Shown: positions 15,865 through 52,203 of the stretch, in pieces | How the letters are laid out: every line of letters starts with the position of its first letter | Position numbering within the stretch: the first letter of the stretch is position 1 | Assembly (NCBI GenBank): GCA_002269645.1 | Contig: NIVC01001533.1 | Span: forward strand, 1 to 64,000 | DNA length: 64,000 nt | Direction of reading: 5' to 3' | Source: Macrostomum lignano | Taxonomy: Eukaryota | The notes under the pieces: model-generated | What the model saw: only the letters and a program-made list of their open reading frames with translations | Told to the model about the DNA's origin: nothing | Databases searched by the model: none | Position numbers and translations under genes: made by a program

Positions 15865-16663
15865 CACAGTGGGAGATGACACAGTGGGAGATGACACAGT
15901 GGGAGATGACACAGTGGGAGATGACACAGTGGGAGATGACACAGTGGGAGATGACACAGTGGGAGATGACACAGTGGGAGATGACACAGTGGGAGATGAC
16001 ACAGTGGGAGATGACACAGTGGGAGATGACACAGTGGGAGATGACACAGTGGGAGATGACACAGTGGGAGATGACACAGTGGGAGATGACACAGTGGGAG
16101 ATGACACAGTGGGAGATGACACAGTGGGAGATGACACAGTGGGAGATGACACAGTGGGAGATGACACAGTGGGAGATGACACAGTGGGAGATGACACAGT
16201 GGGAGATGACACAGTGGGAGATGACACAGTGGGAGATGACACAGTGGGAGATGACACAGTGGGAGATGACACAGTGGGAGATGACACAGTGGGAGATGAC
16301 ACAGTGGGAGATGACACAGTGGGAGATGACACAGTGGGAGATGACACAGTGGGAGATGACACAGTGGGAGATGACACAGTGGGAGATGACACAGTGGGAG
16401 ATGACACAGTGGGAGATGACACAGTGGGAGATGACACAGTGGGAGATGACACAGTGGGAGATGACACAGTGGGAGATGACACAGTGGGAGATGACACAGT
16501 GGGAGATGACACAGTGGGAGATGGCACAGTGGGAGATGACACAGTGGGAGATGACACAGTGGGAGATGACACAGTGGGAGATGACACAGTGGGAGATGAC
16601 ACAGTGGGAGATGACACAGTGGGAGATGACACAGTGGGAGATGACACAGTGGGAGATGACACA
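15856..16663. repeat. 15-bp minisatellite GGGAGATGACACAGT, about 54 copies
   Basis: Almost perfect array with one variant unit near 16522. It begins in the last codons of the coiled-coil ORF. Confidence 0.98.
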
Positions 16664-17676
16664 TCATCTCCATGTATCATATGGATCAAATGTATGTATG
16701 TATGTATCATATGGATCGTACGTTTCCATGTGCATTTCAAAAAATGTTTAAACATAAAAAAATATTTAATAATAATCTATTCAAGATTACGTTCACTAAC
16801 TTCAAACTTCAATATTTCCTGCTTAAAAATATTTATTCACACAGTAGTCTAGAAATGAATAAATAAGACATACGAACTAGATTTAAGACTTAGACAACAA
16901 ATTTACTTTGCTATTCAACAAAAACTGTGTATGGCTCAATTACGAATGGCATTGAAGAATCGCGAGCTCATAGGTCAAAACGGGCATGCTGTCGTGAAAA
17001 TTGCATAGCAATCTGTGCTATCCTAGAAAAGATAATGCTCTGAAACAAAGACAATCCTTGCATAATTAATACAAACTAATGCGAGAGCAATTAGTGAGGT
17101 GTGTAACGACAAAATAATAAATTTCTCCCTTTGATAGCCTAGCATTGGTCGAGTCCCCCTGCTCTGTGATAACTCGTCGGCACACAATATCCGAACTGAC
17201 TACTCGCGAGTAGTGAGTAAGCAGTCGACAGAAGGTGAGACACCCAGTGTGCGCAGAATTCATGGTTCAAAAAAATTGAAATGGACCACAAGGGAAACAA
17301 TACTCTAATTATAAAAAAATAGTGCTCAAAGCTTGCTCATGAGAGTTTAGTTGCAACTCTTTCGGTGCTGAAAGCAAAAAAAATTAGCGATCATAAAAGT
17401 GCAGGGAATTCCAAGTGAAGTGGCGCGTGCTTCATCAAGCTTTGCTCACAGGGAATATCTGGGCTTGCAATGCCATCCACGCAGGATTCTCTGTGAATTA
17501 AAGGGTGCAAAAGGTCAATTATGAGTACCTTATTCTCCAATTTTTGCTCACATGCAATGCAAAAGGTCAGTGTGTACATCACTATTCAGTCTGGTAAATG
17601 TACAATGGTCGCCCGCCTCATTCCACTCTCATACAGCAACCCCACTCCGCATTCTGATTGGCTGTGGCTTGGCAGT

Positions 17677-26600: not shown

Positions 26601-29600
26601 CGCCAGTGTTTCTTTTTTACACTTTTCAAGAAAAAATACTGAGGAAGTGAAAGAGGAGTGAAGGTTAGGAGAATCGTGAGTTCACAGGTGCGTCGCACCC
26701 CTTTGTTCGATAGTTCAATAAACAATTGGAGTTCAGACAGATACAGATATCCTAATTAATTGGGCAACTATGAATGCTTAATTCTACTACTGTACAGTCA
26801 GGGTACTCAATGAACCCTCACCAGTATTTCATGGCTGATTGAGATTTACCTGATACTTTTATTAAAAAATCTCAATACTTAGTTACTAAGACAGCAGTCT
26901 GCTAACAACAACAGGCTACTGAGGCAGCAGGATACTTGGCCAATGGAACAGCAGGATACTTGGCTAATGGAACAGCAGGATACTTGGCTAATGGAACAGC
27001 AGGATACTTGGATAATGGAACAGCAGGATACTTGGCTAATGGAACAGCAGGATACTTGGATAATGGAACAGCAGGATACTTGGCTAATGGAACAGCATGG
27101 TACGTGGCTAATGGAACAGCAGGATACTTTGCTAATGGAACAGCATGGTACGTGGCTAATGGAACAGCAGGATACTTTGCTAATGGAACAGCAGGATACT
27201 TGGCTAATGGAACAGCGTGATACTTGGCTAATGGAACAGGATACTTTGCTAATGGAACAGCAGGATGCTTGGCTAATGGAACAACCGATTACTTGGCTAA
27301 TGGAACAGCAGGATGCTTGGCTAATGGAACAGCAGGATGTTTTGCTAATGGAACAGCGGGATACTTGGCTAACTGGGACAGCAGGATACTTGGCTAATGG
27401 AACAGCAGGATACTTTGCTAATGGAACAGCATGGTACGTGGCTAATGGAACAGCAGGATATTTGGCTAATGGAACAGCAGGATATTTGGCTAATGGAACA
27501 GCAGGATGCTTGGCTAATGGAACAGCGGGATATTTGGCTAATGGAACAGCAGGATACTTGGCTAATGGAACAGCAGGATACTTGGCTAATGGAACAGCAG
27601 GACACTTGGCTAATGGAACAGCAGGATACTTGGCTAATGGAACAGCAGGATACTTGGCTAATGGAACAGCATGGTACGTGGCTAATGGAACAGCAGGATA
27701 TTTGGCTAATGGAACAGCAGGATACTTGGCTAATGGAACAGCGTGATACTTGGCTAATGGAACAGGATACTTTGCTAATGGAACAGCAGGATGCTTGGCT
27801 AATGGAACAGCGGGATATTTGGCTAATGGAACAGCAAGATGCTTGGCTAATGGAACAGCGGGATATTTGGCTAATGGAACAGCAGGATACTTGGCTAATG
27901 GAACAGCAGGATACTTGGATAATGGAACAGCAGGACACTTGGCTAATGGAACAGCAGGATACTTGGCTAATGGAACAGCAGGATACTTGGCTAATGGAAC
28001 AGCATGGTACGTGGCTAATGGAACAGCAGGATATTTGGCTAATGGAACAGCAGGATACTTGGCTAATGGAACAGCGTGATACTTGGCTAATGGAACAGGA
28101 TACTTTGCTAATGGAACAGCAGGATGCTTGGCTAATGGAACAGCGGGATACTTGGCTAACTGAACAGCAGGATACTTGGCTAATGGAACAGCATGGTACG
28201 TGGCTAATGGAACAGCAGGATACTTGGCTAATGGAACAGCAGGATACTTGGCTAATGAAACAGCATGGTACGTGGCTAATGGAACAGCAGGTTATTTGGC
28301 TATTGGAACAGCAGGATACTTGGCTAATTGAACAGCAGGAAACTTGGCTAATGGAACAGCAGGATACTTGGCTAATGGAACAGCAGGATACTTTGCTAAT
28401 GGAACAGCATGGTACGTGGCTAATGGAACAGCAGGATATTTGGCTAATGGAACAGCAGGATATTTGGCTAATGGAACAGCAGGATACTTGGCTAATGGAA
28501 CAGCGTGATACTTGGCTAATGGAACAGGATACTTTGCTAATGGAACAGCAGGATACTCATGTAATCTGGAAGCGGAAAACTTACTTTGGTAGCATTCGAG
28601 CAATCAGCATCTCGGTCTTCTTTTTTTCAACCTCAAGTTCCGTTGTTCTTTCCCGCACTGTCTCCTCCAAATCTGCCGAGTACTTCTCCATCATTTTGAA
28701 CATGTGGTCCACGATGTTCATCTTGCGTCCCTGCAGGAGGCTCTTGAATGTCTGGTAGACTGAGTCCATGTCTGGCCGCATCTCTGGATTCTCAGCCCAG
28801 GCCTGTTTTAACACCTGGATGAGACAAAAACAAGACCGTGTATTGACGCTTTCTGGTGCTTAGACAAAAGAGCTTTACGAGACACACGTGTCTCCAGTCA
28901 CAGGTGTTTTGAGCCATCGTCAATTTTACCTGAATATAGGCTGGCGGCGCCTCGCTTTGAGTGACCTGCGGTCGGCAAAGCGGCGGAGGCTTGCGCACTT
29001 TACGAAGAATCTCTTCGGCCGACATGCCCATCATGCCGAAGGGCGAGTCCCGCGTGATGATCTCCTGCATGACGATGGCGAACGCGTAGACGTCGGCCTT
29101 CTGCGAGCCCGGATGCGTGCCGGTGGGCGGTGGCGGCTCGCGAAGCAGCTCAGGAGCCGTCCAGAGCATCTGCTCGTCAGTAAGCTGCGGCCGATTGTTG
29201 TAGATGTTGTACACCTGATTCAGGCCGTAGTCAGTCAGCTTCAGCACCCAGCGCCCGTCCACTACGCAGTTGCTGGAGTTGAGGCTTCCGTGCACTGACA
29301 CGGGACTGTGGTGCAGGTAGCGAAGGCCCTGAAAGAGAGATCAGCATCTTTTTACCTTACAAAGAGCAGAAGTGAATAGCTTTACCAGATTTACCATGGA
29401 CAACAAGACTCACCCTGACCAAATCCGTTAGCAGTGACAGCTTGAACTCCCAGTCAAGATTCACCGATGGGTTGTTGATGATGTCCTGGGAGGCGAGAGA
29501 GTTGAGAGATTTTGATCACTGAGAGCTACTGGTTCAACTAATGTACATGTATGCTTGTTTGCGGCGGTTGTACCCTAGTGGTGAGAGCGTCGGACTTACG

Positions 29601-32600
29601 ACTGGAAGGTCGGGAGTTCGATTCCTGATCTTATTGGAATAATTTGTGTCCTTGAGCAAGATATAACTCTGCATTGCTTCAGTTCACCCAGCTGTAAAAT
29701 GGGGCCAGCATTAGCTGGGGTAATTGAGGGTGTGTGTGGCGACCCCCCAGTCCTTGGACTGAACAGCCGTACGCAGCCTTCAGATGCGCCGCGCAATAGC
29801 TGCGGCTGAGCTGTCGGTTGCACATAAGGCCCAATTGGGGCAGGTGTAATCAATTGTTCATTATTATCAAATATTGTTTGTCAAAACGCACCTTCAGGCT
29901 ACCCCTGGTGCAGTGATCCCAAACCATGGCCAGGTACTCCATGTCAACCAGTAAGCCAACAAACGGATTGACATTTTCGTTGCGGATTTCTCTCAGCATC
30001 CGAATGTACGACATCATTCGGCTCTTCACAGAGTGACCGGGCAACTGCAGGTAGCTAACGTGAATGAAATCTCCCTGGAAATGAAGAATAGTAAATGCAC
30101 AAGCTTTATCAGTGCCCTACACGGTGCGTTAAAAGTATTAAAGGGAGCTCTCACATTGTACTTCGCAGTGTTGGAATCCGTGGCCTCGTTCTCGCTGGTC
30201 GGGCTCTTTAACGAGCGCCTCTCGGCCACAGCGTTCCGGAGCGTCTCAGCCTGGTGGTTTTGGTTCTGCAGCAGTCCTGGCAGGGCCACCTCTGCCACTG
30301 TGACGTCCGCCGCCTTCAGACTCTGCAAAAATCAGCGTTTATTTAGCGTTTAGCGTTCATCAGCCAAGGACCACTGTAGAATAACAGGACGTAAAACTCA
30401 AAGAGTGTGTAAGTTTAAGGAGGCCGATTTCCTGGAAAAAAATACATTAAGGAGATAGGAAAAATCATTTGTCATTTTTTTCATCACAAAATCAAAGATT
30501 TTGCATTTGATTTGGGGCAGTGAAGATTACTTTTTTAATTTAGGCATTATTGTAGGTATAGTTCCATTCAAATGCATATGTTTAGGTATTCCTAGACCTG
30601 TCTAGACAAGCCCTTAAATAATTAAATTTTTGTTTGTCTAAATAATTTTATGTAGACAACGTTTACCAATTATCTTTTCTCATTGTTGACTTTTTCGATA
30701 TCTATCAATTTTGAAGCCAAGAACGCAAATTTCACTTGTGAGTATTTACAAATTTAGCTGGGGCTTATGAAATAGCTAGAAAACAATATGAAAATGAAAC
30801 TTTCACTACACGACTATATAAAATACGAGTACAACAGAGTAACATGTTGTGCATGATAAATTAAGAAAAGGTAGCTTTCTCAGCCCCAGTTCAAATCCAA
30901 TCATTGATTTTTGATGAATAAAATGATTTTTTCTTATCTCCGCAGTGTACTTTTCTAGGAAATCGGCCTCCTAAAAATTGCATACTCTTTGAGTTTTACG
31001 TACTGTTATACTACAGTGGTCCTTGGTAGCAGCTCTGGGCTGCAGTAGAACAGGGTACCACAGCCCTCAGCATTTGATGCATGCAGCAACATATTTCAAA
31101 TCAATTAATGGCCGAACAGTCTCAAACCAATGCTCACCGGAACGCTCTTGTTGATTCGGTTCTTCTGGAACTCCACATCCATGGGATAGAGCAGCATCTT
31201 GTTGGGCCCCTTGGCCAGCTCCTTCCGGCTCTGGTATCGCCTGGAGAAGGTTTACAAAAAAGGGATTTTCCCGTTCCTCATCAGATTAGCAATCTCTAGT
31301 TCATAATGCAGATTCAAAACTAAAAAGCGAGGCCCCCCGAGCACCGCCTGAAGCTCGAAAATCGGATTTCTGTCTGCCTGCATTAGTCGCGTCAGTTTTG
31401 ATATATTCATCCGCCCTTTTAACGTCTCGGAGCACGCGATGGACTCAAGAAATCAAGAATTAGGCTCTTGATGATGATGATGGTTTTCCAGCGAAAGCAG
31501 TGCTAGTGTTTAAGCCGTTACGCACCTGAGCTCTGTCGGATCCCACAAGCCCCACCTTGGATGTTTGGCTCACCTGACCAGCAGGAAAATAACAAATCCG
31601 GCGCCGGCAACGAAGAGGAGCGAAGCCAGCAGAATCACGCCGTGCATTGCCGTAAATCCACCTGGGAGTCAAAGGCGGGACTGGGCTGATTTAATCACTC
31701 ATCACGCATTTAGAATCGGTAAAGGCACCAGATGAAATTGCTTGAATATTTGTCTGTTCCGTTCCTTCAAAATAAGTTTGCAATAGAACAATCTAGAATA
31801 ATTCTGTACATTTATAATCACGGGAGTAGGTTGTCGGTACTTGGGTAGGAATGCAAGGAGTGGAATTGTCGGTAGTGGGGTAGGAATGAGGGGAGTGGGG
31901 TTGTCGGTAGTGGGGTAGGAATGAGGGGAGTGGGGTTGTCGGTAGTGGGGTAGGAATGAGGGGAGTGGGGTTGTCGGTAGTGGGGTAGGAATGAGGGGAG
32001 TGGGGTTGTCGGTAGTGGGGTAGGAATGAGGGGAGTGGGGTTGTCGGTAGTGGGGTAGGAATATGAGGAGTACGAGCCAATTTGGCTTAGAACGGGTAGC
32101 TCAATAAGGCACAGGCTTACCCGCCACTTCCGGTTCCGGGCAAACAGAGAGGAAGCACGAGTCCTCGCCCGGCACAGCACCCAGCTCGCTAGCCAAAGCC
32201 TGCACTGAGTTGTACGCAGGCCAGTTGATGGTGAGCACTGGCATGAACTGGTTCCGGGTAGGCCAGTAATCTAGCAGCACAAGGTCTAGGAGCGCTTGAC
32301 CGTCGGAGTCGATGACCAGCTGGTCGAAGGAGCTGGAGTTCGCCAGAGGAACAGTCAGGTTGACGAAGGCGCCGACAGCTGGAAAGCTCGGCGATGCGCT
32401 GGCCAAGGCGGTCCAGGCTACGCTGGTCTGCATGCCGAAGTGCACCTGCTGGAATCGCGAAAGTGAGCAACTCTCTTTTTATTGCGATTGACTACATACC
32501 TTTGATGACCTTCAGATGTGACATGCTCGCTCACGAGGCTCCAAGGACCTTTCCCCAATCCTTCCCCTCTCGATCCCTTCTCCTCTCGATCCCTTCTCCT

Positions 32601-35600
32601 CTCGATCCCTTCCCCATCGATCCCTTCCCCATCGATCCCTTCCCCTCTCGATCCCTTCTCCTCTCGATCCTTCCTCTCTCGATCCCTTCCCCATCAATCC
32701 CTTCTCCTCTCGATTCTTCCCCTCTCGATCCCTTCCCCATCGATCCCTTCCCCATCAATCCCTTCCCCATCGATCCCTTCCCCATCGATCCCTTCCCCAT
32801 CGATCCCTTCCCCATCGATCCCTTCTCCTCTCGATCCCTTCCCCATCGATTCCTTCCCCATCGATCCCTTCCCCATCGATCCCTTCCCCATCGATCCCTT
32901 CCCCATCGATCTCTTCCCCATCGATCCCTTCCCCATCGATCCCTTCCCCATCGATCCCTTCCCCTCTCGATCCCTCCCTTCCCCTTAATTCTTCTCGATC
33001 CATCTTCTGTTTCAATTCACTCCCTCCTATCCCGAACTGCCAAACCAGCAGCTGCTCCGAGGCTCACCTGTCCGACCCGTCCGTCAGTGGAGACGGCGCT
33101 CGCATTGGCGCCGGCGGGCAGGGCGCCGAGGATCACCAGGGATCCGGCGGCTGACGCAGTCAGATCACCGCCAGCTGCCATCAGGCTGTCCCAGGTGAAC
33201 TTCAGATCCGGCAGAAGGAAGATGTCGCTAATTAGCACAAATATGTAGGTGGCATCGGTGTAGCCCAGGCTCCTGGTCTCCAGGATAGTGCGAACCGCTG
33301 CCGGGGTCTCCATCAGCATGATGACCACTGCGGGGCCAGATGCGGGTGGCTTGTTGGAACAGTCTTTAAGTTGTGACTTACAGTCTTACTTACTTTCAGG
33401 AGCAATTTGGCTTTAAAAGTTGCAAAAAGCCTGTTCTTTTCTACCCTCTAAGTCAGAGACTGGCGAAATTTTTTACCTCAAGGCCAGATAGAAAACATAG
33501 CGCATTACTGTGGGCCAGAGGAGGGAAAAGAGAGGAGAGGGAATAGAGAAGAGAGATAGGAAAAGGGAGAGGCGAGGGAATAAAGGAGAAGAGGAGAGGA
33601 AAGAAGAGAGAGGAGCGAAGCGAAGCGAAGAGGAGGGAAGAGGAGAGGAGAGGAGAGGAGAGGAGAGGAGAGGAGAGGAGAGGAGAGGAGAGGAGAGGAG
33701 AGGAGAGGAGAGGAGAGGAGAGGAGAGGAGAGGAGAGGAGAGGAGAGGAGAGGAGAGGAGAGGAGAGGAGAGGAGAGGAGAGGAGAGGAGAGGAGAGGAG
33801 AGGAGAGGAGAGGAGAGAGTAGATTCGACTAGGGAGCTGAGAAAAGACAAACCTTGAGCGGGCGGGATTGCTATTGTGAAATTTCAAAGTACCCGAGGGC
33901 CGGATAGAGAGGCTTCGCGGGCCGGAGTTTTCTGACCCCTGCTCTAAGTTAATCATTTGCTCCTTTGCCAACAATGCCAATCTACTCTCTGCAATCTCAA
34001 ATACCGAATAATATCTAGAGCACACGGCCGTGAGAGTCGATATTTAATGAGCGTACGGTGTGAAAAAGGTTTACAGATGAGTACCAATGCAAACTGCATG
34101 CATAGAAGCAATGCATTCGGCATGTAGCAAGGCAGTGCTAGCAGTGGGCTCCCAGTTTCAAAAAGGAAATTCGGTTACTATGCAAGTCGTCTCAAATTTC
34201 GCTTGGTTGCTATGGGCGAAATAAATTTCAAGCCAAGGATAGACAAATTTCAAAGGCAAGCGAGAGTATCCATCTTGATATCCGAATGAGGAACTGGATT
34301 CCAACTGTAGCTCGGGTGCCCCTTCCGCCGCTCCCCACTCCCCTCCCTCCGCCGGGAACCCGTGATTAGAAGCGCAAAGCTCTGCCTTCTCATTTGTGGC
34401 GTTTGCTCGCAATTTTTTTTCTCTTGCTTCGTCTTCTTCTTGTTCGCGCCGACTTGTTGCGAATTTTGTCTTTTGAGATTCTTAACCGAGCGAAGGGCCT
34501 TGCTAGCGAGTCTCCTGGAAGCAGAGAAAGCAGCAGCAGCAGCAGCAAAAGGCGGGAAATTGCTGGCTTCCTTTTAACAGAGCGGACAAACGGACGACTG
34601 AACCTCCCTGTGGCTAATTACCGATGAGCTCTTGGGTGGCGCAGGTATAATTGCTCCCCTCTTGGCCGGTTAAGATGAGGGAGGAGGGATCGGGCAGGAT
34701 AAGCCTCGGATTATAGCGTTTGTTGTGTGCTTTCGCCTGTGCCTCTGCTTTCAGTTAAAGCTGTTTTCTTTTACTAACGAAGCGATTCATGGACATGGGC
34801 TCTAAATAGTAGAAATTTATAAGTCATTGTGATTGAAGGAAGGGTGTCGTTTGAAAGAGAGTGTATGGAGGGTATTTATGGAAGTTATCTGTCTTTGAAA
34901 GTGTGTAAGGAGGGTACATCCGCATGATGCTTCAATAGTAATAGTAATTGATTACTGTACCTTCCCCAATTGGGCCAGATGTGCAACCGACAGCTCAGCC
35001 GCAGCTATTGCGCGGCGCATCTGAAGGCTGCGTACGGCTGTTCAGTCCGAGGACTGGGGGGTCGCCACACACACCCTCAATTACCCCAGCTAATGCTGGC
35101 AACAATTTTACAGCTGGGTAAGCTGAAGCAATGTAACTGTGTCTTGCTCAAGGACACAAATTTTCTAGTGGGAACGGGAATCGAACCCAGACCTTCAATT
35201 CCACTAACCACTAGGCTACAACCCCCTCAAGCAAGTGACATTATCTCCAATCGGTCGTAAGGGCATTTACAGAAGGGTATATGGAGGGTATCTTCTAGAG
35301 GTACTTTAATGAAAATAAAAAAGGGTATTGTCAAGCTGGTGCTTGAAGGGTCCGCCCTGCCCAGCTACAAAATGCAGCCTCGGAGCAGCCGCCATACCCT
35401 TGACGTTGGCCACTCGTCTTAGCCGGGCCAGCGCGTCCGCAGCGGCCCCTCCGTCGGCTCCGACGCTGAGGAAGGCGGCCGCCGGGATCTCGTAGTCCAG
35501 CAGCGACAGCTGCGCACCGAGCTGGTAGGCCGCCCGCTGCCAATAGTCCGAGCCAGACTGCCACAGCACCGCCAGGCCCTGCCAGCGGAACCGGCTAAGC

Positions 35601-36064
35601 AGGGCCACAGCGCCGCTGACCAGCGTCGTCAGCGACGGCGCCAGACTTGGCAGCGCCGGCGCGGGCGGGTCGACGCAATTCCACGACACGGCGGTGGCAT
35701 TGGCGGCGCCAACGCCGGTCCACGAGGCGGCGAGCTGGCAGAGGTCGGGCTCCGGAAAGCCCAGCCAGATCAGCGGCTCCCGACGGGCGAGGACATCGGC
35801 GACGGCGGCGCCGAGGGAGTCGCGGCCGGGCCGGCCGGTCATCGGGTCGCAGGTGAGCGGCACGGCTCGGACGGTCAGCGAGCTGGCTGGGACAGCTGGC
35901 GGCAGCATCAGCGAGGCGGTGGTGTTGAAGAGGCCACCAATGATCAAGCTGCTGGAGTTGACCCTGACGGTGCCGCAGTTGTCGCCCTGAGTCAGCACCC
36001 AGACTTCAACAGTGGCAGCGGTCGACAAGCCAACGGCAGCAGACAGCAGCAGCAGCATCAGCAT
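17677..36064 (-). CDS. Receptor (transmembrane) guanylyl cyclase: signal peptide, extracellular domain, TM, kinase-homology domain, cyclase domain
   Basis: Phase-consistent exons 36064-35398, 33327-33068, about 32448-32121, 31661-31574 ([24 protein letters not shown]), 31240-31138, 30322-30155, 30074-29892, 29485-29414, 29328-28930 ([23 protein letters not shown]), 28814-28585, 25410-25218 ([12 protein letters not shown]), 22911-22697 ([10 protein letters not shown]), 20284-20033 ([17 protein letters not shown]) and probable last exon 17977-17677. GTP-specifying E and C residues are present. Confidence 0.93.
18438..18640 (+). mobile_element. Second, unrelated tRNA-derived SINE-like element
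   Basis: GGCCGTAGCCCAGTGGTCTAGTGCG (A box) .. GGCTCGATTCC (B box), followed by a non-tRNA body. Single copy in the window. Confidence 0.5.
19540..20000. repeat. Minisatellite, 40-bp dimer of two 20-bp monomers (CTCAAGTGAAATGGCGCCTA / CTCAAGTAAAATGGCACTCA), about 11 dimers
   Basis: Strictly alternating monomers in the last guanylyl cyclase intron. Confidence 0.96.
20430..21305. repeat. 88-bp tandem repeat, about 10 copies
   Basis: Period 88 measured between CCAATTCA occurrences (20521, 20609, 20697). Two alternating variants (GCTGCCATTG / GCTTCTGTTG). Confidence 0.96.
21840..22505 (+). mobile_element. Internally deleted Tc1/IS630-like DNA transposon with long TIRs
   Basis: Inverted copies of TTGGTCCAACAAGCATCAATTTGGTCCA (about 21883-21910 and 22363-22390). 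Interior frames [22 protein letters not shown] and [15 protein letters not shown] resemble the two HTH motifs of Tc1-type transposases. No DDE domain seen. Confidence 0.5.
23276..24083. mobile_element. hAT MITE carrying an internal 28-29-bp minisatellite
   Basis: 16-bp TIR CAGGGGTCGGCAACCT at both ends. Perfect 8-bp TSD GTCAACGG (23268-23275, 24084-24091). Interior array of TGGGTCTTTACCCTCCAGAATCCGCCCC. Confidence 0.93.
24247..24689. mobile_element. Three abutting long hairpins (probable non-autonomous DNA element)
   Basis: Inverted repeats at 24247-24380, 24384-24563 and 24564-24689. The third has 30-bp perfect arms. Confidence 0.65.
26925..28557. repeat. 24-bp minisatellite GGAACAGCAGGATACTTGGCTAAT, about 68 units with variants
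   Basis: Directly visible array in a guanylyl cyclase intron, ending about 25 bp from the donor at 28584. Confidence 0.97.
29562..29853 (+). mobile_element. tRNA/CORE-like SINE (copy 4)
   Basis: Same head, core and tail as copy 3. Lies in the intron between exons 29892 and 29485. Confidence 0.9.
31825..32062. repeat. 35-bp G-rich minisatellite, about 6 copies
   Basis: Unit GTCGGTAGTGGGGTAGGAATGAGGGGAGTGGGGTT with three G4 runs per unit. Confidence 0.93.
32545..33000. repeat. 15-bp C/T-rich minisatellite CGATCCCTTCCCCAT
   Basis: Fills most of guanylyl cyclase intron 2. Confidence 0.93.
33454..33941. mobile_element. hAT MITE with internal (GGAGA)n expansion
   Basis: Perfect 8-bp TSD CTCTAAGT (33446-33453, 33942-33949). 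Right TIR ..GACCCCTG. Interior homologous to the 14112 and 52204 copies. Confidence 0.88.
34940..35225 (-). mobile_element. tRNA/CORE-like SINE (copy 5)
   Basis: Reverse complement matches copies 2-4. Confidence 0.88.
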
Positions 36065-36792: not shown

Positions 36793-38131
36793 TTGCCCAA
36801 CACTGTCAACTTGTCAGTTTTGATTGACCTGTTTCTTTTAGCTTTCTTGCTTAAAACATACTGTTGCATCATTTTTGCGTCACGTGTTATAACAACAATA
36901 CGGTATTTGTATTGTATCTCCTGTTCAAAACATAGAGATATTTCTTTGAATTCGACTTTATAGGAAGATAGTCCGTTCCCTCCGATCGTCAGTCTTCAAG
37001 TTTTTATATATATTTTTAAAGTAAGAACTCATATGAATATTCATCTCAGAGAAGAACCATCACATATGATGATTTCAATAATTACAATAGGTAAAAAATT
37101 ACAACAAATTTCCCGTACCATCGTGTTTAAACACAGCAAAGTTCAGTTCACGTTCCCGCCCGCCTATGTCACTACAAGGCCGCGTCACGCAGACCGCCAA
37201 CTCAAGCAAGATAATTATGTCAGGAAGGAAGACTGCGCAGGTCGCAGCCAAGCTCGCCGACTCCTTCCTTTCTCCCTCTGCTGTTGCCTTCCCAGGGTGC
37301 AAAAATGATTGGCCAAGCGACAGGAGTAAAAAGATTTTGCTGTCAGCTCTGCTGCAAGTAGAGTGATAGGGGCAGAATAACACAGTATTTAATAAACCGG
37401 TTGGTAAAAATACTTGTATATTGTGCAGCTTAATGTAGGAAGCTATCGCTCTTCAACCTCGGATTTTACAATAATTAAAACTAAGTTCTTTAGAAGCACT
37501 TTAGCTTGTCGCAAAAGTGCTTTCATATGCTGCAAAAAAGAAATGGCAACTTGCAAGCCGACAATAAAACGAAGTGAAAGTATTTAGAAAAAATAAATAA
37601 AATCATAATACACATGCCTCGGATAAAGTATTACATTACTAAAAAGAAAAATTATTATAAAATCAACACAGTAGTATTTCGCAAGTTTTTACTTTTTAAA
37701 TCCATATACTAAAAATGGTTTTTCGGTAGGTATCTATGTGATCGATTTCTTACTACGCTCGTATATAGCTACATGAAATCAAATTAGCAAAGTGCATACC
37801 AAAATAAATTAAACTAAACTAATTCAAAAGATACAAACAATAAGTAGCATGCCAGCTTACTTGTACATAAACCTGTCTATTTGTCTAATATTAAATCTGC
37901 AATAATCGAAAGTAAATCTCAAACTAATTTTACTATGCTAATTATTTTTTTAAGCAGACTCTTGTTTGTACTTTGCTTAGATTATATTAGTTCTCGCTTG
38001 TTCAACTATTTTAAAATTAGCCAGTTAAAAAATCTATAAGTTAATTTAAAGCTAATGAATTATGACAGTAACTACTCGTAAATCGGTAAACTTCAAAAAC
38101 ACCACAAACACTACAAATAGTTGAGAAGTGT

Positions 38132-40900
38132 TTACTTTTCGATAAGCACTCTTTGCAGCCTCATATCCTTGCACCAGTTGTTGCACTTGTGCTTCTGAAA
38201 GTACCTCCGGATGCCGGGTTTGCCCAAGTTCCATGGCAGAAAGCGAGTGACATCCAGGCAGTGAATCTTGGCACTTTTTATCAGGGCCTCGCCTGCTTCG
38301 TCCGGCACCGACTCGGAATATATCTGCAAAAATCACGGGAGTTATAGTCTACGAATGCATCTGAGCTGAAAAAAAGGTACTTGTAATTTGAACCTAATTC
38401 TTGTCCGTTAACTAACCTCCAGGTTTTCCACCATCAGATAGCCGCCAGTGACAGAATGTGTCCAATGCGCAAAACAGTTGAGAACAGAATTGCTTGGATC
38501 CTCCAGCTTGAATCGTTTAGGTGAGGACACAGAGGACCTTTGTGATGTTTGGCGATGAACAATGTAGCCCGGGGACGCCTGCTTAGAGGACGGGTTTCCA
38601 GCAGCTGAATGTGAAAAACCAGCTGCACCTCTGCGATCGGAACTGTAGTAAGAGTCGCTACTACCTCTGTCATAGGACGGGTTTCCAGCAGCTGAATGTG
38701 CAAAACCAGCTGCACCTCTGCGATCGGAACTGTAGTAAGAGTCGCTACTACCTCTGTCATAGGACGGGTTTCCAGCAGCTGAATGTGCAAAACCAGCTGC
38801 ACCTCTGCGATCGGAACTGTAGTAAGAGTCGCTACTACCTCTGTCATAGGACGGGTTTCCAGCAGCTGAATGTGCAAAACCAGCTGCACCTCTGCGATCG
38901 GATTCGTAGTAAGAGTCGCTACTACCTCTGTCATAGGACGGGTTTCCAGCAGCTGAATGTGCAAAACCAGCTGCACCTCTGCGATCGGATTCGTAGTAAG
39001 AGTCGCTACTACCTCTGTCATAGGACGGGTTTCCAGCAGCTGAATGTGCAAAACCAGCTGCACCTCTGCGATCGGAACTGTAGTAAGAGTCGCTACTACC
39101 TCTGTCATAGGACGGGTTTCCAGCAGCTGAATGTGCAAAACCAGCTGCACCTCTGCGATCGGATTCGTAGTAAGAGTCGCTACTACCTCTGTCATAGGAC
39201 GGGTTTCCAGCAGCTGAATGTGCAAAACCAGCTGCACCTCTGCGATCGGATTCGTAGTAAGAGTCGCTACTACCTCTGTCATAGGACGGGTTTCCAGCAG
39301 CTGAATGTGCAAAACCAGCTGCACCTCTGCGATCGGATTCGTAGTAAGAGTCGCTACTACCTCTGTCATAGGACGGGTTTCCAGCAGCTGATTGTGCAAA
39401 ACCAGCTGCACCTCTGCGATCGGAACTGTAGTAAGAGTCGCTACTACCTCTGTCATAGGACGGGTTTCCAGCAGCTGATTGTGCAAAACCAGCTGCACCT
39501 CTGCGATCGGATCCGTAGTTGTAATTTTTTCTGACGGGCTCTGAATCATGAGTTAGTATTGCATCAGATTTGATGGGCTTAGCTGACGTCACTTTGCCTG
39601 GATTCCAGTCATCGTCAATTATTTCAAATTGATTGGCTCCCGCGAGCTTCTTCTCAAATCGAAATGGGCATAGCAGTGCCGGAGCGAGTCCTGCACGTCG
39701 CGTCCTTGGAATGATGACAGCAGTCGGGAAAGGCTTGACGGCTGGTACGATTTTATTCAACCTGTTGAACTCCTGAAATAAAAACGTCGCTACCTGAAGA
39801 ATCTCGCAAGCATTGAGAAGTACGAAAGGCTGCTTGAACGTATTTTTGCAGTCGCATACAAGGAACTCTCGCACAGTTGCTTTGTGCCATGGCGCTTCCC
39901 CCTCTTTGAGTAGCGCAAAGTACTCTGCAACCAGTCCTTGGAACGCGAAGGGACGGGCAGCTTTCCTCACTTGCACGCTGAAGACGGTTCGGTTGAGTTC
40001 GGAACCGTCAACGATGCTCTGTATTGAAGCTGGCACGCCAATAGCATGGTACTGAAAGTCTTCTGCAGCCGCATCCTTCCAGTCCGGAGCGCCCGAATCG
40101 GGGGTGGCAGTTGCTACGGTGAAATTTGGAATACCGCAGATGTCAACTTTGACATTGCGGAACTGCTTGTTTGCATCTTGGAGAATTTTTTTTACAAGGG
40201 CGTCACTGCTCCTCAATTCAATGGCTTCCATGCCGACGAAGTGTTTCTGGAGTACAGTTAAAACTTTTTCATCCCAACTGATAGGGACCCAGTAGTAACT
40301 CAGATTCTTCTGACGGAAGCTGTCACCCACTCTCGACGCACGGTCCTCAATTGCTTTTGATGCTGGATTAGACTTCGGTGACTTTGCTGTAAAGTGGACG
40401 ACAGCTTTGAAGCTAGAAATCGATTCGTGCAACTCTTGACAAACCCCTGCGGCAAAGTTCATCGCTTCGAGCTCGTCCAATAACGAAACTGATGAATATT
40501 CACGCATACGAGTACCTCTTGGACTGTATACTAGGTCCAGAATGCTTTGACTGTTGGATGTAAAGCGGATGACTTGATAGCCTTGTTCCTTGTAAAATAC
40601 AGCCGCAAACACGGCAATTTTTTTTCGCTCCGAGCAATTCATTTTCTGCGACAATGTGAGGATAACTCGTCGAATTGAGTCACACCTAGAATCAGTCAAA
40701 ACGTGGCAGTTAATTACGAAGCAGATGAATACTTTTGCCTCTCGCTCTCCTTCTTCTAAGACCTGCTGAACTTTCTGATTTCGCAGTTGAATTGCAATTT
40801 GGAAGCGGCGGACGAGCTCCTCCTCATTCTCCGTGGGCCTTCCGTATTCCATATCGCTCTGCTCGAAGATCCACCGAATTCGTTCGTTAATGGACAACAT
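38132..40900 (-). CDS. Degenerate-VWA + alpha-kinase-like protein, predicted pseudokinase, with internal 29-aa repeat array
   Basis: ATG 40900 (MLSINERIR). Exon 1 to 38417 (VENLE|GTTAGT), exon 2 38323-38132. Colinear with the 42270 gene: FAAVFYKE, YYW, APDW, PFAFQG, CEILQVATFLFQEFN, CFAHWT, KIHC, NLGKPGI, HKCNNWC. MIDAS DxTGS is replaced by NCHVL, DLQG by NLE-I, and TDP by KSA. Confidence 0.85.
38588..39518. repeat. 87-bp tandem repeat, about 10.7 copies, in frame (29 aa: (E/S)SDRRGAAGFAHSAAGNPSYDRGSSDSYY)
   Basis: Period 87 measured (38588 to 38675). No stop codon in the gene frame. Confidence 0.97.
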
Positions 40901-42269
40901 GCCGTAGCATACGATGCAATGAACTGCAATGAGAATGACGAGTAATGGTTGCAAATTATAATTGTCTGAGTCACCAGTGAAAAATGGATATCATCCATAA
41001 AAGCGAGAAAAGACAATTATTAGGTAGGAGGAAGTCTCATTAAATTTTTGCCATTGACGGCTCGCATTGGGCGACGCAAAGTAAAAAATTTAAGCAATTT
41101 ATTGTAAGTAAAAAAGTTAAGCAATGCAATGCACGTCGTATCTAGTTTAGTTTATGGGCGTGGAACAAAAATAATTAGAGTCAGCACGGGGGAGGTGCTA
41201 ACATAGATCTTATATTCCCTAGATAGGCCACTTTGTATGGCGGTAATAGGGAAAGTGCGACCGCTGTTTTTTGTCACTTGTGCGAAAAAGCCGACATGGG
41301 TTGCTTATAAATTTGAGTTCAGTAGCTCAGGGACAAAGACGCTATTTTTTTAGAATTTAAAAGAACTTTTCATGAATTCAATAAAAAGCTATTCAATCAA
41401 ACTAATAATGATGCATGCACTGCAGTGACTAGTGACGAAATTGAGTTCAGTAGTTGATTTTCACGCTGTCGCGAGTAGCAATTTTTTTACATTAGCTTCT
41501 ATGGCCACATAAGTGGTTAATGAGTGGCCCATCTTGTGTATATAGCTCGTATGATCTTGGGTGCTAATACATGAAGTAACCAAGGTGACGTGCTGAGTCA
41601 CTCAGCCAGATAACTTCATTTCTGGGTTGGTGCGCATTGGTCGGTTTACTGGGCAGGCCGTCATTAAATGCGTTGGATTTAAATCAAGAGAAAATTTTAA
41701 ATAGTCGAAAAAAACATTAAACCAAAAATAAGTACAAATCGCAAGGAATTAGACTAGTGATTTCTGTTTAGTGATCCCACGGCGAGGATAAAGTCGATAG
41801 ATCCACAAGATATACCACCCATAAGAGTGCTAGCGTGCGTATTGTGCGTTTTGGAAGTTTAATTTGCCAATAGTAAAATCCTACCTTGATTTTTGGTAGA
41901 GACTTGCTGGTCCGGAACGAAAGCTTAGGCCAAATACAAGTGGAGATTAACCTACAGTAGACAGGAGGTTACTATGACATGAGCAAAACAGCTATACACT
42001 CGTAGGGGTCAAAATGATTAAAAAGATTGTAATGTTCAGGACTTCCTGAAAACAAACTCGATTTGGTTTAACCCTCTACTTTGCTTCCTGAATCGTGCTT
42101 TAAATTATTTATCTTCTCCTTACGTCATTGGTCATTTTATAATGAACGAATCGTATCCTAGCGCGAACCAGACGGTGAAAACTATTTCGTAAAAATGAAA
42201 AACCCTAAATAAGTTTTAAACGCATTTAAATTTTTTTCTGTTCACAAAATATACGAGTAAAGTCTGACT
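40901..42269. promoter_or_regulatory. Probable bidirectional promoter region between the two alpha-kinase paralogues
   Basis: 1.37-kb AT-rich gap between divergent start codons. Positional inference only; no specific motif identified. Confidence 0.45.
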
Positions 42270-44026
42270 ATGGAGAAACATATGGACCTAAGTCGGCTAA
42301 ACCAGAGGCTGCGCAACATTTGCGAGAACGGAGGCGTGGAGTTTGGTCCTGACCCCACAGATGAAGAGGAGCAAGTCAGGCGCTTCCAGCTGGCGCTGGC
42401 CATCACGCAGAACAACATTAAAAAGACCATGAGCCAAATAAAGCAATCGAGGAGTGTCGACATGTGCTTTCTACTCGACGCCACTGGCAGTATGGCTGGG
42501 CACATCAGAGGAACAAAGGACAGCATAAAGAAGATATTGAACACTCTCGTTCGCAGTCAGCAAAACCAGGCGACTGTTGAGAAGATCCGGTTTGCCGTTG
42601 TAGCCTACCGCGACCTGACCGATTCTGTTCCGCTTGAAGTATCCGACTTCAGCGAAAATGCGGAACAGTGCATCGGCTTTCTGGAAAGAATTGCTGCTAC
42701 AGGCGGAGGTGACGTACCGGAAGACGTGTTCGGAGGTTTGGAAGCCACCACGAAACTCAGCTGGTCGGAAACTGCAGGCACGCGGATCATTTTTCACATC
42801 TGCGACGCTCCGTGCCACGGAAACGAGTACCACCCAAGCTACATCCCTGACAGTTACCCAAATGGGGATCCAAAGGGTCGCACGGAGCATTATCTGTTCG
42901 ATCAAATAAAAAAGCTGAAAATCGACTATTACTTTGGAGAGATCAACAAGTCAACAGCGCAAATGCTGATCAAGTTTGCCATCGCCTACGGCAGAACAAT
43001 TGAGCACTTTGAAGTGGCAGGAATTGAGCAGATAGCTGGATCGGTTATTCAATCGATCGCCACTTCAGTCGAACGAAACGTAGAAAATTCCAAGTTGGTC
43101 GCTTGCCCCAAAAATTTGCCTGAAGTTGCGTTGAACCCAGAGATTCCAGACTGGTCAAAAAGACCCGTGAATGTAGGCCAATTTTTGGAGTTTGCCGCTC
43201 CATCTTCGATTGCTTGTATCATTGACGACAAAGCTATTAAACAGGAGCACGGTAGCTCCGTAAAAGTCAGGATATCCGAAAGTCCTTTTGCCCAGGGTGC
43301 AGAAAGGCTTGCGTTTTATGCACTGCTGGCAGATTTTGGGGAGCACACTTCTGGCGACAGTCCATCTTCCGACCAGCTGATGGTACTAAAAGAGCCAAAA
43401 AGCATGAATAAGCACGATAAAATCCTGGACAGATGCAATTCGTCATGTGAGGTGCAAACAATCGCAGCCTTTCTTGCCACCGAGTTCAGTAAGTCAACGC
43501 CCAGCGGTATCGAGATCAAGTTCATCACAACAAAGACGCTTGTTCTCAGCCAACCGTCCAGCAGAACAATGACGTGCGAAGAGTTCATGGGGAAGGACGC
43601 TCTGTTTGTGAAGTTTACAAACAACCTAAACTACACTGTGGAGAGGCGCGCTGACGAGATGAAGAAGTGTGGAATTGAGCCCGAGGCATTGGATTACATC
43701 ACGGCATTCTCGCACTGGACTTGGAACGCAACTAAAGGCTTTCTGATCGTTGTGGACCTTCAGGTTGTTCGCTTTTTATACTGCTGATCTGAACATAACA
43801 CTTTTCAGCATTTTTCTGTATAGCAAAATCATCACACATCCTACTTCAGGGGTGCATCCGAAAGTCGTCGGGAAACTCGAAACCGCAGATCTGGATGACT
43901 GACCCAGCAATCCACTGCAAGGACGTAACACGGTACCACCCGACAAACCTCGGTACGGAAGGCATCGAAGAGTTCTTTAGTACGCACCAGTGCAACCGTT
44001 TTTGCAAGGATCTGATCAAGCCTTAA
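42270..44026 (+). CDS. VWA domain + alpha-kinase (eEF2K/MHCK family), VwkA-like architecture
   Basis: Exon 1 42270-43763, exon 2 43850-44026 (phase 0). MIDAS DATGS, GGGDVPED, CDAPCHG. Kinase PFAQGAER, VLKE, KFTNN, AFSHWT, VVDLQG, TDPAIH, NLGTEG, HQCNRFC. Confidence 0.93.
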
Positions 44027-49597: not shown

Positions 49598-51570
49598 TCA
49601 CTTGCGGGCAGCTCGGGCCAGCCGCTTCGCCTCTTTCAGCAGATGTGGCGACGTCTGACAGCAGCCGGACTTTCGCTTGCGAGCCATCGTTGCAGCGTCG
49701 GCGGCTCCGTTGGCCCCGTCGCTAATGGCAACCGATTCTTCGACTATCGATGACGAACTGTTTGACGATGCCGCCGCCCTAGCAACTGCTGACGATTTCG
49801 TATTCGATGAAGAGGCCTTAGCAACAGGCGCTGTTGACCTTGGAGATGCCTTAGCAACACGCGTTGATTTTGGAGTTGTCTTAGCAACGGGCGTTTTCGA
49901 CCTTGGAGACGCCTTAGCAACGGGCGTTTTCGACCTCGGAGACGCTTTAGCAACGGGCGTTTTCGACCTCGGAGACGCCTTAGCAACGGGCGTTGTTGAC
50001 TTAGTAGGCGCCTTAGCAACGGACTTCGGCCTAGCAGAAGCCGCCGCTGCGGCAGTTTTTGCTGTCGCCTTGGCAACGCCATTGCTAGTAGTAGAGTCGA
50101 CTTTGTCGGCAGACGCGTCGGCCCGCCGCTGCAGAAGGGCCCGCAGCCGGGCATACTGCGGCCTCTCGTGATAGCCCAGCCCGGCGGCGTGGCGAAGCAC
50201 CTCGGCCACGGCTTCGGCGTCGGCGGAGCCTCTAGCAAATTGGCAGCGGCCGAGAAAGCCGGCCAGATCCGCCATGGCAGCCTCTTTCGCGCGCTGCACC
50301 CGCTCGTTTTCGTTGCGATATTGTTGCCACGGCAGGTCGCCAGTCAGCCAAGCCAGCAGGCACCAGCCAAGATTCTCAAGGTCGGCGCGGGGCGTCGGCG
50401 CGAGGCCGCGATGGGCGTCGCGGCTGCAGTACTCGGAGGTGCCGTCGTGACGACGCTTTGGGTCCTCCTGGGCGGTGCGGCCGGGGGGAAAAGTTAGAAA
50501 GGTGAGATTCACACTAGATCCTACATTGGCTACAGGTGAGATTCACACAAGATTCTACATTGGCTACAGGTGAGATTCACAATAGATTCTACCTTGGATA
50601 CAGGTGAGATTCACACTGTAGTCTACATTGGCTACAGGTGAGATTCACACTGTAGTCTACATTGGCTACAGGTGAGATTCACACTAGATTCTACATTGGC
50701 TACAGGTGATATTCACACTACATTCTACATTGGCTGCAGGTGAGATTCACACTAGATTCTATATTGGCTGCAGGTGAGATTCACACTAGAGATTCACACT
50801 AGAGATTCACATTAAGCTGCTCAGCCCCGGCACACACACGACACAGAAATCGGGAAATACTTCAGTAAGGCCGGATGGGCAACAGAGCTGCTAACCTTCT
50901 CCTCCTTCAGCCAGCGACCATCGGCTGAGTACCGAAACGCCAGGCCAAAGTCGGCCAGGTACACCCGGTCGGCGCCAGACGTTAACAAATTGGACGCCTT
51001 GACATCGGCGTGGGCGTAGCCGCTGTCGTGAACAAACTCCAGAGCGTCCAGCACGCGAACGGCCACGGCAAAAGCGCGCCTAGCGGGCACGCGGCCCAGA
51101 CTGTCCCGCTGCTTGTCGAACTGCTTCTCAAGATCCTCGCCCAGCCGTTCGATGGCCAGGAACCTGTGATCCTGACCGGCATGGCTGGCGGTGCCGCAGC
51201 CGTAGAATCTCGGCACGCCGACATAGTCGAGACGCTTAGCGGCGGCCCAGTCGCCAACCCGGCTGCCGTCGGCGGCACGCTGATAAAAGTGCATCTCGCA
51301 GAACAGCGGCCCGTTGCCCTTGGGCTCGGCTTTGATCACGCAGTCAATTGGCTGGGCGCCGTCTTCGCCGCCACCGCCGGTGCCGAGGTACACCAAGCCG
51401 AAGCCGCCCTCGCCGATGACGCGACCAACTCGCCAGATTTGCTTCTTTAAGTCGACAAGGCGGGTGCCTTCGGGCAATTGAATCTTGGCTGGCGTTCGTT
51501 TGCTAACACCTGCCGGCTTCTTTTTTGCAGCAGCGGCAGCAGCAGCGGGGCGCTTAGCGGGAGGTGCCAT
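49598..51570 (-). CDS. VRK1: Vaccinia-related kinase (VRK1/ballchen-like, CK1 superfamily)
   Basis: Exon 1 51570-50896 (IGEGGFGLVY, VIKAEPKGNGPLFCEMHFY, YAHADVKASNLL, VYLADFGLA). Exon 2 50467-49598 (EDPKRRHDGTSEYCSRDAHRG, RADLENLGWC), followed by a basic low-complexity tail. Confidence 0.9.
50500..50810. repeat. About 34-bp minisatellite (CTACATTGGCTACAGGTGAGATTCACACTAGATT) filling the VRK intron
   Basis: About 9 units visible. Confidence 0.9.
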
Positions 51571-52203
51571 GTTGCCAGGTAAGCCGGTCTGGGCATGCAT
51601 GAAATTCGTCTTTCAAATAAGCAGTCATTGCGAATTTAGGCAAAATAGTACTGATTGCTATACACTTATGGAGCTAGAAAAATACTATCTAGTACTAACT
51701 AAAAATATCTTCTTTCTTCTCTCTCCTCTCTTCCCTTTTATTCCCTCGCTTCTCCTTTCTCCCATCACTCTTCTCTTTTCTCTGTCCTCTGACCCGAATT
51801 CACGTACATGTACAGGTACAGGTACATGTACAGGTTCCCTATCTGACACTTGACGTAAAAAAGTTTGCCGAGCCCTGATGTAGACTGATTGAGCATTCTG
51901 TGTAAGTTCTGTAGCTTCTACAGCTGGGGCTGGGAGCTGTTCTCGCATCGAGCTTGCAGCCCAAACATTTCTCCTCCTGAGATTGACTTTTATTTGTTAT
52001 CCCTAACCCTACTTTTTGGCCAAGAAAAAGTTCACCAACGAAGATGAGTTGAAGAAAAGGGGACCCTGGATCAACTAAACAAAAAAGTGAATAGCAGGCC
52101 TATTAAACGTGCATAAAAATGTACATAATCTACATAAATCTATTGTTATCTTTGAAATGAATACTCGTAAAGGCGGTGGGAAATGTAATTTTTGTTACTA
52201 AGG

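Follow-up and report, generated by a model that had tools for sequence, protein, structure and literature searches.

A head-to-head pair of an active VWA–alpha-kinase gene and a colinear paralogue lacking the catalytic motifs in Macrostomum lignano

A divergent gene pair of the VWA–alpha-kinase family

We analyzed a 64,000-nucleotide stretch of the Macrostomum lignano genome (assembly GCA_002269645.1, contig NIVC01001533.1, positions 1 to 64,000 of the forward strand; hereafter, the window). It contains two divergently transcribed genes whose start codons are separated by 1369 bp, as an earlier note on this DNA had estimated (about 1.37 kb). The plus-strand gene, here called the active gene, encodes a VWA plus alpha-kinase protein with all catalytic residues in place; the minus-strand gene, here called the dead gene, encodes a colinear family member in which these residues are replaced. 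The features of the pair are as follows.

42270..43763, plus strand: active gene exon 1 (amino acids [aa] 1-498; PAA66754.1 / BOX15_Mlig011109g1), from the open reading frame (ORF), splice junction, and exact match to the public protein
43764..43849, plus strand: active gene intron, 86 nt, GT..AG, phase 0, after ..VVDLQ
43850..44026, plus strand: active gene exon 2 (aa 499-556 and stop), with the G of DLQG, TDPAIH, NLG, and HQCNRFC
42462..42818, plus strand: VWA_4 match in the active protein (aa 65-183; Pfam PF25106, 42.9 bits, E 4.9e-11, cut-off 27)
43290..44005, plus strand: Alpha_kinase domain of the active protein (aa 341-550, split by the intron; Pfam PF02816, 141.3 bits, model positions 1-185)
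40901..42269, no strand: intergenic region between the divergent start codons, 1369 bp, a putative shared promoter
38417..40900, minus strand: dead gene exon 1 (aa 1-828; PAA66753.1 / BOX15_Mlig014766g1 / A0A1I8H2M5), ATG at 40900, ending ..ENLE
38324..38416, minus strand: dead gene intron, 93 nt, GT..AG, phase 0, after NLE (homologous position)
38132..38323, minus strand: dead gene exon 2 (aa 829-891 and stop), KSAKIH in place of TDPAIH; WNLG and HKCNNWC kept
40151..40744, minus strand: degenerate VWA-like domain without the metal site (aa 53-250), colinear with the VWA domain of the active protein; fold from an AlphaFold2 model
39671..40063, minus strand: degenerate alpha-kinase N-lobe (aa 280-410), P-loop Arg lost and Lys replaced by Arg344, from alignment
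38171..38506, minus strand: C-lobe of the dead protein (aa 799-879, split by the intron; Pfam PF02816, 46.3 bits; AlphaFold2 confidence about 95)
38587..39519, minus strand: tandem array of an 87-bp unit, 10.7 copies (codons 464-782 of the dead gene; Tandem Repeats Finder, 98% matches, score 1740)

The product of the active gene is 556 aa long, and our own gene model is identical to PAA66754.1. It has the VwkA-type order, an N-terminal VWA domain with a metal ion-dependent adhesion site (MIDAS) followed by an alpha-kinase domain. Of the MIDAS motifs, D70ATGS and G145GGD lie within the VWA_4 match, and C178DAPCHG (aa 178-184) straddles its end. The family alignment and motif positions identify PFAQGAER (339), VLK374E, FTNN, D496LQG, TD516PAIH, and NLG in the kinase domain, confirming that this gene keeps the MIDAS, the lysine, and the DLQG and TDP aspartates, as had been claimed; the catalytic residues G343/R346, K374, D496, Q498, and D516 are all present. 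The Zn ligands are H482 (FSH482WT) and, within H544QCNRFC, H544-x-C546-xxx-C550. The kinase domain aligns with solved alpha-kinase structures (4KUJ, TRPM7 1IA9, ALPK1, and MHCK-A).

A homology search found family members in flatworms, nematodes, octocorals (where they are named vwkA-like), mosses, oomycetes, dictyostelids, and ciliates. The closest active paralogues within M. lignano are P0002 (46%) and P0003 (44%); each exists in two nearly identical copies, whereas the active gene of the window is single-copy. The active gene adds one more ordinary member to the vwkA-like family. Elsewhere in the family, a partial Pristionchus mayeri gene model (P0001, 894 aa) contains two consecutive family kinase-domain units, which indicates either a tandem duplication or a fused model in nematodes.

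The minus-strand gene lacks the catalytic and metal-binding motifs

The dead gene encodes an 891-aa protein, and our gene model is identical to UniRef A0A1I8H2M5. Its ORF is intact, and the public model uses exactly the predicted splice; this assembly's gene models are based on RNA-seq data together with a de novo transcriptome (StringTie/TACO/TBONE; PMC5730564). BLASTP aligns the two proteins of the pair in two colinear high-scoring segments, with 22% identity over 416 aa (E 1e-14) and 36% over 89 aa (E 1e-16), which bears out the earlier claim of full-length homology.

The dead protein matches Alpha_kinase (PF02816) at 46.3 bits (cut-off, 21.3), but only over model positions 114-185, which correspond to the C-lobe; its N-lobe is recognized through alignment to family members and not by Pfam, and the Pfam search of this protein returned no VWA match. 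The MIDAS is gone: INCHV replaces DATGS, and the CDAPCHG segment is deleted. In the kinase domain, the P-loop reads PFAFQG..V, against PFAQGAER in the active protein, with loss of the Arg; TVR344E has Arg instead of Lys at the site of VLK374E; IIDDD stands where the active protein has FTNN; and N826LEI and KSAKIH take the places of D496LQG and TD516PAIH, so that the catalytic Asp, Gln, and Asp are all replaced. None of the motifs for catalytic competence (P-loop Gly/Arg, Lys, DxQG Asp/Gln, and TDP Asp) is present. What the dead protein keeps are the Zn ligands H812 (FAH812WT), H873, C875, and C879 (H873KCNNWC), together with WNLG. The earlier description of a lost MIDAS, of N and S for the two aspartates and R for the lysine, and of retained Zn-site residues and NLG was therefore correct. 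The dead protein is a colinear family member without the residues for canonical alpha-kinase catalysis and MIDAS metal binding; the intact ORF supports the view that the gene is not a decayed pseudogene.

Such losses are not unique to the dead gene. Besides six M. lignano entries of the same lineage, 13 of 165 collected alpha-kinase C-lobes failed the DxQG or TDP motif patterns, about half of them lacking both and some failing by one neighboring residue; most come from unnamed protist or metagenome sequences. Ten C-lobes (P0161, P0162, P0174, P0179, P0191, P0196, P0199, P0218, P0235, and P0266) lack DxQG and/or TDP and keep the Zn-site motifs; these are mostly from protists and metagenomes, plus Ostreobium, and in some, one of the two aspartates remains. 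As far as these motifs can tell, alpha-kinase domains seem to have degenerated repeatedly.

The dead lineage and its relationship to the active genes

When a profile of dead-lineage members was run against 1.84 billion representative proteins, only P0121, P0123, and P0124 scored as strong hits, and all three are M. lignano proteins; all remaining hits covered the C-lobe alone, at E 4e-16 or weaker. Neither this exhaustive profile search nor a word-indexed search with P0123 found the lineage outside M. lignano, although few macrostomid genomes are covered, making this weak evidence of absence. Within M. lignano the lineage occupies at least three loci: the intact window copy (W), a paralogue (Y; P0122, P0123, and possibly P0271), and a copy in a duplicate block (X; NIVC01000192.1, L004). 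Y, known from UniProt only, is the older paralogue; it is 67-90% identical to W depending on the region and has the same degenerate motifs. PFA.QG, TVRE, IIDDD, and KSAKIH are common to W and Y, so the motifs were lost before W and Y split, with reading frames maintained from then on. At the site of the former catalytic Asp, W has N (ENLEI), X has D (EDLEI), and Y has G (EGLEI), a drift that is expected if the site no longer does chemistry.

The position of the phase-0 intron is indeed the same in both genes of the pair (after DLQ and NLE), as the earlier note had observed. The intron after DLQ is also found in P0002 and P0003, that is, in all four M. lignano family genes examined; it is thus a family character and not a mark of the window pair. 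The dead protein is about equally distant from the active protein (22.5% identity), P0002 (21%), P0003 (24%), and a nematode homologue (23%). In a neighbor-joining tree the dead lineage forms a very long branch without a firm attachment point, placed basal to the flatworm and nematode clade in 62% of bootstraps and sister to the Macrostomum active genes in 12%. No DNA-level inverted repeat is left between the two genes, only short AT-rich chance matches. It is plausible that the dead gene derived from its neighbor by local inverted duplication.

A tandem repeat insert between the kinase lobes

The 87-bp array encodes 29-aa units rich in S, A, G, R, D, and Y (SDRRGAAGFAHSAAGNPSYDRGSSDSYYE), placed between the two kinase lobes. 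X and Y each carry a single unit; with only one unit in X, the expansion is specific to the window copy and recent. The array is open in three frames: besides the coding frame, a second one on the same strand and one on the opposite strand. The earlier note had argued for selection from about 830 uninterrupted codons. Exon 1 does have 828 open codons, but 310 of the open codons of the gene belong to the array, which, being open in other frames as well, says nothing about selection; this leaves about 580 non-repeat codons that are informative on maintenance of the ORF.

The NCBI model PAA66753.1 (775 aa) equals A0A1I8H2M5 (891 aa) minus four 29-aa repeat units, from the same DNA. Either the array was collapsed in transcript assembly or splicing occurs within it. 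A difference in repeat number between assemblies was rejected as the explanation, since L001, the 22.8-kb locus recorded for PAA66753.1, is 100% identical to window positions 28132-50900 with no gaps.

Other long, near-perfect, frame-neutral tandem arrays, seen as multi-frame ORFs, lie at 10326-10851, 15620-16852, 26943-28758, 32394-34025, and 56090-56766; examples are arrays of a 15-nt unit (GDDTV, repeated about 70 times) and of a 24-nt unit (MEQQDTWL). Tandem and simple repeats reportedly make up 15% of the M. lignano genome, and these arrays agree with that figure.

Decay of the duplicate copy and selection on the window copy

Block X shares with the window the upstream protein-kinase gene, a 115-aa gene, and the downstream flank at 96-99% identity (L004 positions 9229-11580 of NIVC01000192.1 correspond to window 37099-41201), and the 300 bp adjoining the ATG of the dead gene are conserved in it. 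The active gene is absent from the block. Its dead gene lacks the first ~256 codons and has deletions of 14, 10, and 3 nt as well as an insertion of 2 nt: four indels (three frame-breaking, the 3-nt one in frame) in ~650 nt on top of the 5' truncation, where the window copy has none. X shows what unconstrained decay looks like at this locus. Because the active gene is lost and the dead gene disabled, the pair was not retained in the duplicate. The truncated, frameshifted X gene still has a transcript-derived model (P0124, BOX15_Mlig003895g1), which continues beyond the normal stop codon and takes in a further exon downstream, homologous to the minus-strand window ORF at 37099-37383.

We compared W with X by the Nei-Gojobori method, computing the ratio of nonsynonymous (dN) to synonymous (dS) divergence and the probability (P) of the excess of synonymous changes. 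Over all 340 comparable codons, dS was 0.096, dN was 0.052, and dN/dS was 0.54 (P 0.017); in the kinase N-lobe core (aa 268-425; 146 codons), dS was 0.091, dN was 0.024, and dN/dS was 0.27 (P 0.009). Exon 2 has one synonymous and no nonsynonymous difference. Since X is now itself a pseudogene, these values overestimate dN/dS in the W lineage. The check proposed in the earlier note, dN/dS on the dead copy, thus gave values below 1 overall and in the N-lobe, and close to 1 near the insert. Purifying selection on the dead gene appears to be real but modest.

Amino acid identity by region shows where W and Y agree, next to the corresponding values for the active protein.

N-terminal helix: W versus Y, 88%; active protein versus P0002 / nematode P0004, 40% / 29%
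VWA or VWA-like domain: W versus Y, 71%; active protein versus P0002 / P0004, 62% / 52%
Linker: W versus Y, 89%; active protein versus P0002 / P0004, 35% / 20%
Kinase N-lobe: W versus Y, 90%; active protein versus P0002 / P0004, 42% / 37%
C-lobe (exon 2): W versus Y, 70%; active protein versus P0002 / P0004, 50% / 45%

By these identities, the conservation profile of the dead lineage is inverted relative to that of the active family. This fits a shift of constraint from the metal-binding VWA domain to the linker and N-lobe surface, and gene conversion could give the same pattern.

Predicted structure of the dead protein

An AlphaFold2 model was made for the 775-aa version with a 51-sequence family alignment. 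Its segments, numbered by that version and given with the predicted local distance difference test score (pLDDT), are as follows.

Residues 1-52: N-terminal helical segment, pLDDT 85-97
Residues 56-250: alpha/beta VWA-like domain, pLDDT mostly 60-90
Residues 280-400: kinase N-lobe, pLDDT 80-96
Residues 410-686: repeat insert, pLDDT <35, disordered
Residues 687-775: kinase C-lobe, pLDDT ~95

A Foldseek search of the Protein Data Bank matched the VWA-like region to VWA domains with probability 1.0 and a target template modeling score of ~0.6; the matches include vWF A1/A3 and CMG2 as well as the MIDAS-less interaction modules Rpn10 and TFIIH p44. Because the alignment includes VWA-containing homologues, the model is compatible with a VWA fold and is no proof of it. 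The dead protein is predicted to retain the N-terminal helix, a VWA-like fold, and both kinase lobes.

Neighborhood and recurrence of the pair

Recurrence of active/dead pairs in head-to-head orientation, which the earlier note had proposed to look for, was not seen at the other M. lignano loci scanned. A tblastn search with dead-lineage proteins over all four other active loci available (L002, L003, L005, and L006, which hold P0002, P0003, and their duplicates) matched only inside the active genes, and no dead partner lies within 10 kb of any of the four.

Four neighboring genes of the window, all on the minus strand, were assigned to types.

3476-6087: amiloride-sensitive ASC/DEG-ENaC channel
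28792-36064: ANF-receptor/kinase-homology receptor
49598-51600: Ser/Thr protein kinase, with a repetitive Lys/Ala/Ser-rich tail
53840-54448: glutamate dehydrogenase

An immunity context was rejected, since the neighboring channel, receptor, protein kinase, and glutamate dehydrogenase are not immune-related; nothing in the surrounding genes points to the role in immunity that the earlier note had suggested. A literature search found no paper or supplementary table naming these M. lignano genes.

A pseudokinase beside an active kinase: interpretation

We consider it somewhat probable that the dead gene is a lineage-specific pseudokinase from the VwkA-type VWA plus alpha-kinase family, that it has a non-catalytic role, and that it came to lie beside the active gene by duplication. 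The pseudokinase lineage would descend from the VwkA-type family, and so far it has been seen only in M. lignano. Having lost the MIDAS, the P-loop Gly/Arg, the catalytic Lys, the DLQG Asp and Gln, and the TDP Asp, the dead protein would have given up phosphotransfer and almost certainly nucleotide and metal binding. It would still be expressed as a folded protein with its N-terminal helix, a MIDAS-less VWA-like domain, both lobes, and a structural Zn site, and the 87-bp repeat expansion would recently have added a long, disordered, low-complexity insert between the lobes. The ~580 non-repeat codons that are still open despite divergence to 22% identity favor this reading. The most likely role would be that of a non-catalytic binding or scaffolding protein, which may use the conserved N-terminal helix and kinase-domain surfaces to partner or compete with active family members; we infer both the scaffold or regulator role and any heterodimer. 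Adjacency to the active gene would most simply be a leftover of local duplication, not functional coupling.

Several observations weigh against this interpretation. The signal of selection is a modest one, drawn from 61 substitutions relative to one decayed duplicate, and dN/dS is 0.9-1.1 in the stretches flanking the disordered insert. Divergence between W and X forms a mosaic, with 98.8% identity in the downstream flank, a dS of 0.026 in exon 2, and a dS of ~0.1-0.17 in the N-lobe (compared over window 38132-40132 and L004 9459-13300). Amino acid patterns among the three copies also depend on the region: in the N-lobe, 5 positions have W=X≠Y, 7 have X=Y≠W, and 1 has W=Y≠X, and exon 2 shows no pattern other than W=X≠Y (19 positions). 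Both observations make gene conversion among the dead copies possible, and this may distort dN/dS and the regional conservation pattern. Polarized by Y, W has 7 to 8 private amino acid changes in the N-lobe, so it is not strongly constrained; X has only 1 dispersed change there, and its 12 private changes over all regions are mostly clustered beside its indels. The public Y models are all partial or have internal gaps, and P0271 has a frameshifted stretch. The AlphaFold2 fold is driven by an alignment of mostly active homologues. The searches described above found no orthologue of the dead gene in another species, and a search of literature and supplements found no expression-level, localization, or interaction data for these M. 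lignano genes.

Some of these points are what one would expect if the dead gene were a relic nearing pseudogenization, transcribed and open but near-functionless, with a frame that reflects past constraint; we rate this as unlikely, though well worth keeping in mind. Duplicate X is already truncated and frameshifted with no sign of compensation, and the frameshifted stretch of the Y-type model P0271, the private nonsynonymous changes in the window copy since the X split, the dN/dS of ~1 around the insert, the toleration of a 930-bp repeat expansion inside the kinase domain, the N/D/G drift of the former catalytic position, and the confinement of the lineage to one species in databases all agree with such a relic. 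Against it, the ~580 non-repeat codons have no stops or frameshifts, whereas X, in the same time, gained its four indels in 650 nt; dN/dS in the N-lobe is low (P=0.009); and the Zn ligands, NLG, and hydrophobic core are kept in a fold that is predicted with confidence. What PMC5730564 reports on this point is limited to additional large chromosomes in the M. lignano DV1 line and a substantially redundant assembly. Loss of one copy after whole-genome duplication would be normal fractionation and would not make the remaining copy dispensable. The earlier inference of a non-catalytic protein under selection thus finds some backing in the intact ORF, the predicted fold, and the dN/dS values, even if the signal is modest. 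The opposite view, that the dead protein is still an enzyme using non-canonical residues for phosphotransfer or another nucleotide-dependent reaction, strikes us as very improbable. Some proteins first classed as pseudokinases proved to be re-purposed enzymes, and the dead protein has Arg at the Lys position, Glu at the Gln position, Asn (Asp in X) at the first Asp position, and, in the model, a retained fold and Zn site. However, at least six elements were lost together (P-loop Gly/Arg, Lys, FTNN, Asp, Gln-Gly, and TDP), and variation of the first Asp position among N, D, and G between copies is incompatible with a conserved catalytic role.

The earlier note had instead proposed a co-regulated kinase/pseudokinase module, possibly acting in immunity or stress signaling. 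In an obligate module of this kind, the two genes would share a bidirectional promoter, and the dead protein would be a sensor for or regulator of the active one. The genes are head to head with 1369 bp between start codons, and promoter sharing is plausible because upstream regions of up to 2 kb sufficed for faithful reporter expression of tested M. lignano genes (PMC5730564). Within the N-terminal half, the helix at the N terminus is the part best conserved between the two proteins (33% identity, with 21-25% elsewhere in that half), and alpha-kinase domains can heterodimerize, as those of TRPM6 and TRPM7 do (PMC2827801). In the duplicated block both genes, not one alone, were lost or disabled, and the active gene and the intact dead gene are single-copy while P0002 and P0003 kept both duplicates. 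The joint loss in L004 is, however, equally explained by deletions in one contiguous segment. In addition, the four other active loci have no dead neighbor within 10 kb, the dead gene shows no specific relationship to its neighbor, no orthologous pair was found in any other species searched, the literature search found no co-expression, interaction, or infection data, and the surrounding genes are not immune-related. With no partner at the other loci and the pair lost in L004, we regard the module as improbable. A narrower version, in which the dead protein is a dedicated partner of its neighbor, co-transcribed from the 1.37-kb region and heterodimerizing through the N-terminal helix and lobes, with the S/G/Y/R-rich array tuning localization or assembly, seems to us decidedly improbable.

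Comparison with known systems

We know of no function for the animal vwkA-like proteins. The active protein resembles VwkA and these proteins in having an N-terminal VWA domain with MIDAS and a C-terminal, catalytically complete alpha-kinase domain, and the dead protein is colinear with them; unlike VwkA, the dead protein lacks the MIDAS and every catalytic motif and has a 310-aa disordered repeat insert between the lobes. The VWA plus alpha-kinase architecture is broadly present in invertebrates, and Dictyostelium VwkA is linked to myosin II regulation and the contractile vacuole (reviewed in PMC2827801), a role that is not transferable to the flatworm proteins.

TRPM6 and TRPM7 have alpha-kinase domains that dimerize through an N-terminal segment required for activity, and these paralogues can heteromerize (PMC2827801). 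By analogy, such dimers could serve as a model for a dead paralogue regulating an active one; unlike the flatworm pair, both TRPM partners are catalytically competent and fused to channels. The defining traits of paired plant NLRs are a conserved pairing, genetic co-requirement, and a physical interaction. The flatworm pair is like them only in its divergent paralogue orientation and short shared intergenic region; its pairing is unique to one locus, was lost in the duplicate block, and has no link to immunity; the sensor/executor analogy drawn in the earlier note is not supported.

The locus offers a natural, fully degenerate copy, in which the MIDAS and catalytic site are gone, the fold is predicted to be kept, the insert is young, and an active copy is adjacent. 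As M. lignano is tractable by transgenesis (PMC5730564), it could be a simple system for probing the non-catalytic surfaces of the family. Should the dead copy be dispensable, the locus would represent ordinary paralogue decay after duplication; should the dead protein be a dedicated partner, the alpha-kinase family would gain its first described kinase/pseudokinase pair.

To our knowledge, ALPK3 is the only alpha-kinase pseudokinase characterized. The earlier note knew of no description of a pair such as this one; for this architecture that is a fair statement, but ALPK3 already provides a dead alpha-kinase domain, which has diverged conserved residues and no detectable catalysis, and the protein is an essential scaffold (PMC9698156). 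Like ALPK3, the dead protein would have a non-catalytic alpha-kinase domain and, by functional analogy, might act as a scaffold. ALPK3 differs in being a vertebrate Ig-domain muscle protein, not a VWA protein, with conservation across vertebrates and a proven function; the dead protein differs from ALPK3 in its far wider loss of residues, its degenerate VWA domain, its young disordered insert, and its occurrence so far in a single species. The dead gene is a lineage-specific variant of a known phenomenon, the dead alpha-kinase.

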